Origin: Orbicella franksi
Lineage: Eukaryota
Assembly: GCA_964199315.1 (NCBI GenBank)
Contig: OZ116698.1
Span: 10,788,001 to 10,852,000, forward strand
Direction of reading: 5' to 3'
DNA length: 64,000 nucleotides
The first letter of the stretch is position 1. The number at the start of each line of letters is the position of its first letter. The position numbers and the translations under genes are program-made. Positions 15,001-22,373 of this stretch are shown here, in pieces. The notes below the pieces were generated by a model. That model was not told the DNA's origin and searched no databases. It was given only the letters and a program-made list of their open reading frames with translations.

Positions 15001-16236
15001 TCCGCGGACAAATTACCGTGCATATTTTCGCGCCAAATGGAGGCTATTGTTTCTCTATTTTGAAAAACTGGTTTGGTACATTAAAGCGCCTGAAAATAAG
15101 GCCGAACTAAAATTCCGTGTGCCAATGACCAGAATTTACTCTGTACACCTGGAGCTAAGTTGAGGATCACGCATCTGGATAAAACTTTGTGGAAGCCATG
15201 AAAATGCTAGTTAGAGGCAAAGGAAAGCAATGCTGCCCTCAGATTTTCTAGATGTCCAGTGAAGTTTTTCCCTTTCTTTCTGGGAATATTTATAGGCGGC
15301 CAGCTAAAGACGTCTTCCATTTATACTGTAACCGATATATTTTTAGATAAAATGATAAAACCCGACCTGAATTAGCCTTGTTGCATGCTGTGCGCGTGAA
15401 AGGCTCGAGAACATGGATTGAGTGTACTTTTGTGGGTGTAAATCTTGTATAGTGGACCGTCAGAATCGGAAACTGTTGAGCTGTTCTGCGTGTACTGCAG
15501 CGTTTCTGTGTTTATTAACGTAATGCATTTACTCCACATTGTCACCAGCCTCACTCAGACTCCTCTCGTGCTGTGATGGAAGCTTCGGTACCCTGCAGTG
15601 TAGCCACACCAAATGTTGCGGAGCAGTTCAAAGATCAGGCCGTTTTACCCGCCGCTTACCTAACACCAACCACTAGAAGGAGCGACAAAGGTGATCATCC
15701 TTACACAATACATTTCAAAATAGTTTTGTCCTTTTTTATTGCACATTAGCTTTGAGATTCAGAATTGGCATGAATTTCTAGTTCACCTCTTCATTTCAGT
15801 GACAATTTCTATTATCCTTTCTGTCCTTTGTTTTCTTTTTGTAACTCATCATAAATGTGTCTCAAGCCTCGAGTCTCGGATTAGAGAAATCGCCTTTTTC
15901 AAACAACGGGCCCTGAAACTCAAGTTATGCTTCTCAAGTCTTTATTATCGCTGTGAGTTGGTTACACGCCCCCTGACTGGGAAACTTTCTAAAGAGTTAC
16001 ACCTTTTTTCTGACCTTGTAGTTCTTGTCGAGGGAGCTTCTTTAGATCTGGACAGTTCAAGCGACAGTGATACAGGAGTGGAAATGGATAAAGACCGGCC
16101 TCAAGTGAAGCAGGATCCATATTTCGATGATATGATAACGCGTATCAACGTTCAGCTAGAGGAAGCTGTGGCTCGCGGCACAAGCCCTTACGCTATATAT
16201 GGGCTGGAAGACGACGATGCAGATGACTGGTGCTGA
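29..16236 (+). CDS. Cav2: Voltage-gated calcium channel alpha-1 subunit, Cav2 (P/Q-, N-, R-type) class; 3' part only (III-IV linker, repeat IV, C-terminal tail)
   Basis: Phase-consistent GT-AG exons: 29-193, 422-529, 1319-1417, 2847-2981, 3712-3777, 4588-4679, 4907-5066, 5739-5866, 5992-6088, 6534-6738, 7042-7142, (7315-7353), 7588-7727, 13877-13973, 15549-15690, 16022-16236. The translation contains [19 protein letters not shown]4 [31 protein letters not shown], pore loop RSATGEDW (selectivity Glu), IVS6 [31 protein letters not shown], pre-IQ/IQ region and C-terminal DDWC*. The IVS4 string and DDWC are Cav2 hallmarks. The distal tail exons are less certain than the repeat IV exons. Confidence 0.95.
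1528..2028. mobile_element. MITE-like element with terminal inverted repeats
   Basis: gagggggtgaatagg at the left end versus cccttattcaccccc...ctc at the right end; repeated cggatcgacggatttgg subterminal motifs. Confidence 0.65.
2527..2812 (+). repeat. Interspersed repeat, copy 1 (second copy about 14735-15056)
   Basis: Shared blocks gattggtctaaacac, gcgttgcgaaaaatatttgaagga, gacattatctgttcct and cgcgccaaat.gaggctatt in both places. Confidence 0.75.
3440..3637 (-). repeat. Interspersed repeat with an inverted copy at about 29143-29340
   Basis: cacgatcgagaattttgttataga and ggacacccacgtgatcgcgc are reverse complements of tctataacaaaatactcgatcgtg and gcgcgatcacgtgggtgtcc. Confidence 0.75.
3638..3665. 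repeat. (GATTAT)n microsatellite
   Basis: Four copies directly visible. Confidence 0.9.
3985..4215. repeat. Palindrome-rich MITE-like repeat (related fragment about 31225-31300)
   Basis: cgcgtcgtattttcaact / agttgaaaatacgacgcg inverted pair and gtgtttgat...atcaaacac hairpin. Confidence 0.6.
5214..5581 (+). repeat. 8-bp tandem repeat (GGGACTAA/GAGACTAA/GAGACCAA), about 46 units
   Basis: Directly visible; lies in the Cav2 intron between exons 4907-5066 and 5739-5866. Confidence 0.98.
7315..7353 (+). CDS. Probable 39-nt phase-0 cassette exon of Cav2 ([13 protein letters not shown])
   Basis: Acceptor ...ggtatttttaag|, donor aag|gtaggt; no stop; in frame between phase-0 exons 7042-7142 and 7588-7727. 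Confidence 0.5.
8233..8335 (+). CDS. Probable alternative terminal exon of Cav2 ((R)[33 protein letters not shown])
   Basis: Strong acceptor tgcgttttatctttgcag| at 8232; phase 2 matches the donor at 7727; open to TGA 8333-8335; AATAAA at 8378-8383. Confidence 0.55.
8378..8383 (+). promoter_or_regulatory. Candidate polyadenylation signal for the short Cav2 isoform
   Basis: AATAAA about 43 nt after the TGA of the putative alternative last exon; AT-rich context makes a chance occurrence possible. Confidence 0.35.
11031..11162. repeat. Minisatellite, about 28-bp unit (gactgaggcaatgtccatgaaaaattat), about 5 copies
   Basis: Directly visible imperfect tandem copies. Confidence 0.85.
14639..14723. 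mobile_element. Short hairpin MITE
   Basis: Perfect 14-bp inverted repeat aacaattattccac / gtggaataattgtt. Confidence 0.65.
14735..15056 (+). repeat. Interspersed repeat, copy 2 (same family as 2527-2812)
   Basis: Same diagnostic blocks as copy 1. Confidence 0.75.
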
Positions 16237-16825
16237 GAGAGATTGTTTCCTCTTGTGAAACTGAATGTGCATATGGCCGCTCGCAGTGCTGGCAGCTGAC
16301 TCAGATCAATCTACCATTCCCCAATGTTCGAGTATTAGTGAAACGAACTTCAAATACACACAACGTTTCTTGTGCAAGCCGCATGAACGCTCGCTCGATG
16401 TTGAGATTTTTCAAGCCCTCTTTTTTAAATGGTCAATCGTGATGTAATCACTTCGACGGTCTTCAGACCTAGAAAAACACACAAGAAAATAACTAACGTC
16501 CGTGCATTAAGTCTCCTTGGTTTTGAGACTGACATTGTTGAAGGCGACAAAACTGAGGGGAGTCTTTGGGATAAACATTGTTATTCTTTCCTACGGCTAT
16601 GGAATGGGAAGCAAGTCAATTATTGACTAAGAACTGGTTGGATCCAAAGATTACAATCAAGCTTTGTGTAGCCTCACTCTTGTGAGAGGCCACGCGTATT
16701 ATGCTTAGCAGAAGTCTCCGCATCAAGTTGTACTCGGCCTCGGTGGAATGACGATTTAAACCGAGTCACAAACTTGAAACCAACACTTAATGATCCAAAG
16801 GGAAAACAATATATTCAGTTAATCA

Positions 16826-21800: not shown

Positions 21801-22373
21801 TAGGGATCTGTTGATTAAAAAAAAAAATGCTTTTTCTGTGTATCGAAATGACGTTGCCCTACAATTGGCGTGTCAATGTGTTGACAAACAATCAGGACAT
21901 CGTATTTAACTCTCTACAGAAACTCTCAACAATATCACTGGCGGTCCTAAAGTTGTAAATAATGTCAGGCGGAATAAAGCACACGAATGGGCCAAACGCA
22001 ACACAAAGCAATAACCAAACGTGCTTACTTTATCCCGAAGAGGAGGAACACAGGATTCTCCACCAGCTGTAAAGTTGCAGTACACTTTAATGGCATCAGC
22101 AGGGCAACCAAGGTTTGGATCAATCCAGTAATAACCTGTAATAAACACGATCAAGCATCCATAAGTACCAACTAAGATTTTCCAACAGCTATTACAGTGA
22201 ACAATTCTCATAACATACACACGCGATGAAGCTAGTTTCTCACCATCCCGAATGTCGTCAATGTCCATGAGTTCTTTACAAGTCATAGCTGGATTGTCCC
22301 TGGTGCCTAAAGGAAATTTATAGTTCTCCACCGTTGAAGACATGTACAGTAGCGTCTTGAGATTGTGTACCGA
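18860..22373 (-). CDS. Collagen C-propeptide (COLFI) exons
   Basis: Five exons with YWIDPNLGC, VYCNF, IQFNFLRL, VKC, DYCQ, LPLEDL and GPVCY motifs. Confidence 0.95.

Follow-up and report, generated by a model that had tools for sequence, protein, structure and literature searches.

Tail-to-tail arrangement of a Cav2-type calcium channel gene with a fibrillar collagen gene within a conserved linkage group of the coral Orbicella franksi

Whole linkage groups are known to be conserved between cnidarians and bilaterians. In human, 9q32-q34 carries ATP6V1G1, COL27A1, PBX3, PRRC2B, BRD3, COL5A1, NOTCH1 and CACNA1B, and PRRC2A/B/C is one of the families of the MHC (major histocompatibility complex) paralogy group. 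The regions of this group lie at human 6p21.3, 9q33-q34, 1q21-q25/1p11-p32 and 19p13.1-p13.4, and the MHC genes that have paralogues include BRD2, COL11A2, RXRB, PBX2, NOTCH4 and ATP6V1G2 (PMC1309616). Here we analyse a stretch of 64,000 nucleotides, hereafter the window, located at C1:10788001-10852000 on chromosome 1 (C1) of the stony coral Orbicella franksi (genome 497 Mb). It holds the end of a Cav2-type calcium channel gene, Cav2a, and a fibrillar collagen gene placed tail to tail with it. The original prediction, made from the letters of the window, was that this direct adjacency could preserve the pre-bilaterian gene neighbourhood from which the MHC paralogy group descends.

Both genes have described relatives in cnidarians. 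Cnidarian Cav2 paralogues include the Nematostella nematocyte channel cacna1a (PMC7250568), and in the same anemone most fibrillar collagens belong to clade A, with NvCol-7 (NV2.24375, 'COBA1-like-1, thrombospondin N-terminal-like') assigned to clade B and bearing a TSPN domain (PMC12549020, PMC10946136). The window channel resembles the cnidarian Cav2 paralogues in being a high-voltage-activated four-domain channel with GPHH and IQ domains and a [D/E]xWC tail; it differs in being of the 'a' type, with the tail DDDADDWC, and in lying within the window by its 3' half only. The window collagen resembles the TSPN-bearing fibrillar collagens (clade B, types V/XI; clade C, types XXIV/XXVII; NvCol-7) in its COLFI domain, its roughly 1 kb of Gly-X-Y coded in 54/45-bp exons and its globular N-propeptide without VWC. 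Unlike them, it has an N-domain that matches no Laminin_G/TSPN profile and gives no usable fold, and its COLFI domain sits on a long branch; clade B is joined in the COLFI tree by another collagen of the same chromosome, at C1:16.97 Mb, and not by that of the window.

The linkage that distinguishes the MHC paralogy group was found on the coral chromosome. Marker families were chosen from the human MHC and its paralogous regions, each being required to have a family-specific Pfam domain. PBX, NOTCH, BRD, PRRC2/BAT2 and ATP6V1G were each detected as a single locus, and all five lie on C1, which at 44,735,515 bp makes up 9.0% of the genome, so that such an outcome has a chance probability of about 6e-6. 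The order along C1 is ATP6V1G, Cav2a with its collagen, BRD, PRRC2, a second collagen, a second Cav2 gene (Cav2c), PBX and NOTCH, which mirrors the gene content of human 9q32-q34 together with the paralogues on 19p13, chromosome 1 and 6p21. Cav2c is found at 17.083-17.092 Mb (- strand), most of its exons being 85-93% identical to a Desmophyllum protein; the clade-B-like collagen at 16.97 Mb, also on the - strand, has its COLFI exons 110 kb away. The stretches concerned are C1:17082000-17091999 (Cav2c) and C1:16966000-16975999 (collagen). Since all five detectable core markers, together with another Cav2 and another non-A fibrillar collagen, share the chromosome with the window pair, both window genes belong to the ancestral linkage group behind the paralogon, and Cav2 genes and non-A fibrillar collagens shared a linkage group with the classic proto-MHC markers before the cnidarian-bilaterian split. 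At the level of the chromosome, then, the proposed paralogon linkage is borne out. The coral arrangement differs from the human one in that the genes occupy about 14 Mb (~7.5-21.7 Mb) and are single-copy, apart from Cav2 and collagen duplicates specific to the lineage; furthermore, Cav2a and its collagen touch, whereas their human counterparts are megabases apart.

The same markers bear on the idea that the two genes are neighbours by coincidence and have nothing to do with the MHC paralogon. Any two genes may become neighbours, and the C1 collagen that groups with clade B is not Cav2a's neighbour. However, the presence of five out of five detectable core markers, a second Cav2 and a second non-A collagen on this one chromosome makes a coincidence that is irrelevant to the paralogon very improbable, and it was already disfavoured.

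With these results, presynaptic Cav2 channels and non-A fibrillar collagens join the genes that were linked with PBX, NOTCH, BRD, PRRC2 and ATP6V1G before cnidarians and bilaterians separated, and the vertebrate MHC paralogy group finds its counterpart in coral chromosome 1 between about 7.5 and 22 Mb. The results help to date the Cav2 and collagen duplications and provide an anchor for reconstruction of the proto-MHC. The C1 linkage is an added instance of the known conservation of whole linkage groups and not a new principle, and it leaves that established picture unchanged.

The adjacency consists of two genuine, expressed and convergently transcribed genes, the 3' half of Cav2a and the fibrillar collagen. 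The stop codons, originally placed about 2.6 kb apart at 16236 and 18860, lie at 16234-16236 (+) for the channel and 18862-18860 (-) for the collagen, 2,623 bp from each other according to open reading frames (ORFs) and tblastn. The span first proposed for the pair, 16022-22373, needs slight correction, as its start is 1-2 bases off the splice acceptor and its end falls inside the first COLFI exon. RNA evidence came from contigs of four sequencing runs aligned on positions 16000-21999 of the window. The last Cav2a exon begins at 16020/16021 in contigs of all four, and in runs X15 and X16 the letters 5' of this start match the preceding exon, 15546-15689, the loose end at 16020 being the end of 15659-15688. 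On the opposite strand, the RNA lacks introns 19007-21378 and 21595-21732 of the collagen, both of which have GT..AG borders. The stretch between the two stops is wholly covered by RNA contigs and taken up by the two 3' untranslated regions (UTRs), which abut, and a scan for poly(A) signals found AATAAA in each UTR, at 17735 (+) for Cav2a and at 17948-17943 (-) for the collagen. A single contig of run X15 is continuous through both genes; in run X16 the Cav2a UTR is covered and the collagen has no coverage at all. The two transcription units thus end roughly 100-150 bp apart or overlap slightly, in contigs that reveal neither strand nor true overlap.

The pair is not restricted to this species or genus, an outcome that would have spoken against the original prediction. 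It recurs tail to tail in three other coral-like metagenome contigs of ENA, L002, L003 and L004 (774, 957 and 256 kb), which were reached via the COLFI exon ORFs and in which the last collagen exon is separated by 3.8, 4.2 and 4.7 kb, respectively, from a downstream exon that ends in DDDADDWC and has the opposite orientation. L002 has 90-97% DNA identity to the reference locus of Porites lutea (L001), L003 is about 87% identical to L002, and L004 represents another lineage. When the window is compared with L002 or L004, exons alone align, at 72-84% nucleotide identity, and no conserved non-coding block was found between the window and the compared coral contigs. As only exons align, the pair must have outlived a complete turnover of introns, UTRs and spacer; the adjacency has persisted through deep divergence among stony corals.

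Such persistence might be taken to mean that the pair is held together by function, its convergent 3' ends providing antisense or transcriptional-interference coupling. The RNA contig that runs through both genes, the proximity of their ends and the survival of the pair while all non-coding sequence turned over would fit this proposal. We nevertheless regard it as unlikely: the contigs leave strand and true overlap unseen, run X16, with channel UTR and no collagen, indicates that the two need not be expressed together, the stops lie anywhere from 2.6 to 4.7 kb apart and a large insertion is tolerated in Porites lutea, and the compared contigs have no non-coding block in common.

We favour, with a probability of about 70%, the reading that Cav2a and the collagen are locally fixed neighbours inside a conserved ancestral linkage group, and that their contact probably does not go back to the time before cnidarians and bilaterians split. 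The two 3' ends would have been joined in the anthozoan lineage, by a local rearrangement inside the linkage group in an ancestor of stony corals or earlier, and the pair would then have been retained because the DNA separating the genes is almost entirely transcribed as UTR, so that few breaks there could be harmless.

Several observations weigh against this reading. The evidence for adjacency spans stony corals only, and the step of passive retention is one that we infer. The Porites lutea reference is collinear with L002 only to about 1 kb past the collagen stop, after which unrelated sequence follows, and no Cav exon was found there within 10 kb past the collagen; the distance between the genes can therefore vary, and in that species they may no longer be neighbours. 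As to the linkage group, the SMARCA2/4 marker (SnAC domain), which comes from 9p24/19p13.2 outside the core regions, is on C14, and four marker families (ABL F_actin_bind, CTF_NFI, FUBP_C and Mtf2_C) had no match anywhere in the genome.

The Porites lutea locus (OY283128.1, 28327521-28351403) has peculiarities of its own. The collagen is annotated there as a 214-aa COLFI 'gene', with one exon split by an insertion of about 1 kb, and a 252-aa TENA_THI-4-like gene is present in copies to either side. It may be an insertion or a rearranged copy.

As judged from its exons and its place in a tree, the window channel is of Cav2 type with a presynaptic-type tail. Fifteen + strand exons code for the last third of a four-domain calcium channel, from the III-IV linker and IVS1 (26-190) onwards, and Pfam recognised Ion_trans, GPHH (1.3e-5) and Ca_chan_IQ (2e-16) in them. 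The gene starts upstream of the window, where domains I-III and the beta-subunit binding site of the I-II linker would lie. The protein ends in a [D/E]-x-W-C PDZ-ligand tail (DDWC, then stop), and a tail of this type is also present in octopus, coral, octocoral and Hydra Cav2 matches. In a phmmer search of PDB, one Cav exon scored 78.7 bits against Cav2.2 and at most 68.4 bits against Cav1. A profile built from cnidarian C-terminal halves and the window exons found Cav2-type proteins as its best non-cnidarian matches throughout (type A/cacophony, N-, P/Q- and R-type); the named full-length cnidarian Cav2 proteins that it retrieved all belong to paralogue c, except for one Paramuricea b.

A maximum likelihood tree of the region from domain IV to IQ was computed with cnidarian and bilaterian Cav1 and Cav2, to which we added the other IQ-exon loci extracted from the same genome, an L-type-like one at C11:10.80 Mb and a second Cav2 at C10:30.74 Mb. 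In this tree the C11 locus is placed with bilaterian Cav1 (100/100) and the window gene inside a cnidarian clade (100/99) that is sister to bilaterian Cav2 (98/98), in agreement with the first identification of the channel. Three paralogue groups form the cnidarian Cav2 clade: a contains the window gene together with a coral transcript and Paramuricea; b, with tails ETWC/ASWC, the C10 locus, coral transcripts and Paramuricea; and c Desmophyllum, Montipora, Stylophora, Actinostola, Dendronephthya and Hydra, with tails of EDDWC type (EEEWC in Hydra). According to this topology, Cav2a is one of three cnidarian-specific co-orthologues of the single bilaterian Cav2 lineage, and does not correspond one-to-one to CACNA1A, CACNA1B or CACNA1E.

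The phylogeny bears directly on the possibility that Cav2-collagen adjacency is ancestral, that is, a eumetazoan micro-neighbourhood that was duplicated within the chromosome and loosened to megabases in vertebrates. There are two pairs of a Cav2 and a non-A collagen on C1, the second separated by 110 kb; in human, CACNA1B and COL5A1 at 9q34.3 and CACNA1A and COL5A3 at 19p13 are each about 3 Mb apart; and the window pair is old within stony corals. In addition, NvCol-7 and NvCol5 (NV2.24536) are about 160 gene numbers apart in Nematostella, which, on the assumption that the numbers follow gene order, would resemble the spacing of the C1 collagens. Ancestral adjacency nonetheless appears unlikely. 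Still somewhat less probable is the stronger proposal that the touching pair is itself the surviving eumetazoan proto-MHC micro-neighbourhood, with both C1 pairs derived from one ancestral adjacent pair and vertebrates keeping only megabase-scale linkage (9q34, 19p13 and chromosome 1). We judge such a relic doubtful because Cav2a is lineage-specific, paralogues a, b and c being confined to cnidarians in the tree; because the more widely conserved Cav2c has no collagen within 10 kb in either Dendronephthya, where the downstream neighbour is an acyl-CoA dehydrogenase, or Actinostola; because the two coral pairs are oriented differently, the first tail-to-tail and the second head-to-tail, which is a misfit for simple block duplication; and because we know of no Cav2-collagen adjacency in bilaterians.

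Searches for the pair outside stony corals gave little. P0073, which may be a Cav2 IQ exon of medusozoan type and lies on a contig of 984 kb, had no COLFI match recorded among the called genes within 10 kb. A protein search with the 91-aa COLFI exon ORF gave one match, and the search of a library with the IQ exon gave mostly fragments. For Nematostella, neither NV2.24373-24378 and NVE12292-12297 nor the Cav2 gene numbers were found named in papers or supplements.

The window collagen, with its COLFI C-propeptide and long Gly-X-Y helix in 54/45-bp exons, is by these sequence features a true fibrillar collagen. In phmmer comparisons with vertebrate C-propeptides, its COLFI domain scored 144, 139 and 128-123 bits for clade B, and for clade A 121.6 bits (human COL1A1, whole domain) and 114.2 bits (human COL3A1); in an exon-level search the best vertebrate matches were all COL5A1/COL11A1-type fragments. 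By similarity the domain thus appears nearer to vertebrate clade B than to clade A. The homologue in Acropora millepora is automatically named 'collagen alpha-1(XXVII) chain-like', and membership of clade C is a lead.

The N-terminal protein of 283 residues had no Pfam match to the VWC or WAP modules of clade A-type N-propeptides. Its spliced N-domain likewise had no Pfam match to Laminin_G/TSPN and no sequence match in PDB at E values up to 10, and a search for a paralogue elsewhere in the genome returned the domain itself only. AlphaFold models made from the single sequence and from an alignment of four sequences gave confidence values (pLDDT) of 34-35 and an all-beta arrangement of eight strands at low confidence. 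The domain ends in a Cys...Cys motif, and its neighbours in a language-model space (Atlas) are beta-sandwich families, all below 0.9, the level at which such matches mean much. We therefore treat the N-propeptide domain as a candidate TSPN/LamG-like domain, not a proven one. In the original label of a 'TSPN-type fibrillar collagen', the fibrillar part stands, and the higher clade B scores and the lack of VWC/WAP matches agree with the label; its TSPN part is a candidate assignment.

A tree of COLFI domains, containing the window gene, its coral orthologues, four genes from C5, the collagen at C1:16.97 Mb and vertebrate clade B fragments, and made without clade A or clade C references, places the C1:16.97 Mb collagen with vertebrate clade B at 94/93. 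For the window collagen and its coral orthologues the tree gives a long branch with no resolved position against the C5 collagens; the COLFI domain of the window gene is short. Of the two phylogenies first suggested as a check on the pair, the Cav2 tree confirms the channel as a Cav2, and the COLFI tree assigns to clade B the other C1 collagen and leaves that of the window on its long branch. Apart from the window gene, the true fibrillar collagens of the genome, among many COLFI loci, are those on C5 at 2.7-3.5 and 30.7-31.8 Mb and that at C1 16.97 Mb.

The C5 genes form two fibrillar collagen clusters (2.74-3.51 and 30.71-31.77 Mb) with at least 10 COLFI loci, in which the Cys of the DPNxGC motif is missing. 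Probably they correspond to the clade-A-like expansion that sea anemones are known to have.

The positions of the exons, UTRs and chromosomal markers are collected in Table 1.

Table 1. Features of the Cav2a and collagen genes (window positions) and core linkage markers on chromosome C1
Feature	Position	Strand	Basis or copy number
Cav2a, 12 exons: III-IV linker and domain IV (S1-S6, pore), EF-hand/GPHH, IQ, proximal C-tail	26..7728	+	ORFs, Pfam, tblastn with transcript-derived P0244 and P0215
Cav2a, exons 1-6 of these 12	~26-190, 419-532, 1316-1405, 2850-2984, 3709-3777, 4582-4680	+	
Cav2a, exons 7-12 of these 12	~4905-5069, 5742-5867, 5990-6088, 6531-6737, 7041-7150, 7585-7728	+	
Cav2a, 2 distal C-tail exons	~13875-13979, 15546-15689	+	tblastn with P0244
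Cav2a, last coding exon (acceptor TTGTAG/TT; ends ...DDDADDWC; TGA 16234-16236)	16021..16236	+	ORF, tblastn, RNA
Cav2a, 3' UTR (~1.55-1.64 kb)	16237..17880	+	RNA contig ends at 17789 (X19) and 17878, then adapter (X16)
Collagen, 3' UTR (~0.9 kb)	17950..18859	-	spliced collagen RNA contig (X19) down to 17953
Collagen, last coding exon (COLFI end ...FGVKIGPVCYQ) and TGA 18862-18860	18860..19006	-	Pfam COLFI 5e-7; 100% tblastn to P0004; RNA joint 19006
Collagen, last intron	19007..21378	-	RNA joint 19006>21379, CT..AC
Collagen, COLFI exons	21379-21594, 21733-21807, ~22031-22135, ~22241-22377	-	tblastn with P0004, RNA joints, Pfam COLFI 2e-19
Collagen, helix end and C-telopeptide exon	22565-22624	-	tblastn with P0004; exon-only DNA matches to L002 and L004
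Collagen, triple-helix exons	22994..41973	-	ORF reading, exon scan, tblastn
Collagen, N-propeptide globular domain exons	45453-45940, 44813-44941	-	spliced transcript L019
Collagen, 5' exons	58305-58699 (5' UTR), 57705-57858 (ATG ~57802), 55844-55946 (signal peptide end)	-	blastn of L019
ATP6V1G (V-ATPase_G)	C1 7.55 Mb		single locus in genome
BRD (BET)	C1 15.82 Mb		single locus in genome
PRRC2 (BAT2_N)	C1 16.64 Mb		single locus in genome
PBX (PBC)	C1 17.51 Mb		single locus in genome
NOTCH (NOD)	C1 21.74 Mb		single locus in genome

The collagen gene covers about 41 kb of the - strand (~17.95-58.7 kb of the window). Its 5' end was traced with L019, a metatranscriptome contig of 1,697 nt that corresponds to the spliced 5' end, and its C-terminal end with P0004, a transcript-derived fragment of 332 residues that is essentially identical to the spliced C-end. 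About 0.9-1 kb of Gly-X-Y was located, in at least 48 AG/GT-flanked exons of the canonical 54 or 45 bp at 24511-41973 and in three more 45-bp Gly-X-Y runs. Between exons 24511 and 22624, 30 residues of P0004 (five Gly-X-Y-Gly-X-Y units) were left unplaced by tblastn, which is consistent with 18-nt microexons at 22994-24239.

Mobile elements have entered the gene at several places. By ORF reading, the last intron contains a reverse-transcriptase fragment at 19346-19878 and further repeats through 21240; over 19346-21240 the summed depth of the RNA libraries runs into thousands, far over that of the flanking exons, and these are presumably expressed or abundant repeat families. A near-full-length retroelement of the long terminal repeat type occupies 47600-51700 (-) in intron 3, between exons 55844 and 45940, with ORFs for a gag-like zinc knuckle, protease, reverse transcriptase, RNase H and integrase, some of them split by frame changes. 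A 169-aa ORF within the gene, at 25854-26363 (+), looks by eye like the GIY-YIG endonuclease end of a Penelope-like element.

Two other families were set aside. An RXR gene beside the collagen, as in the human pair RXRB-COL11A2, was ruled out, since zf-C4 loci are absent within 2 Mb; of the 16 nuclear-receptor DNA-binding-domain loci, C1 carries five, none of them near the window collagen. GED/dynamin was rejected as an ambiguous marker, having 11 loci, one of them at C1:21.39 Mb. On another chromosome, at least eight dynamin-family GED domains follow each other in tandem on one strand within 180 kb (C3:33398410-33575993), by appearance an expanded set of Mx-like or dynamin-like GTPases.

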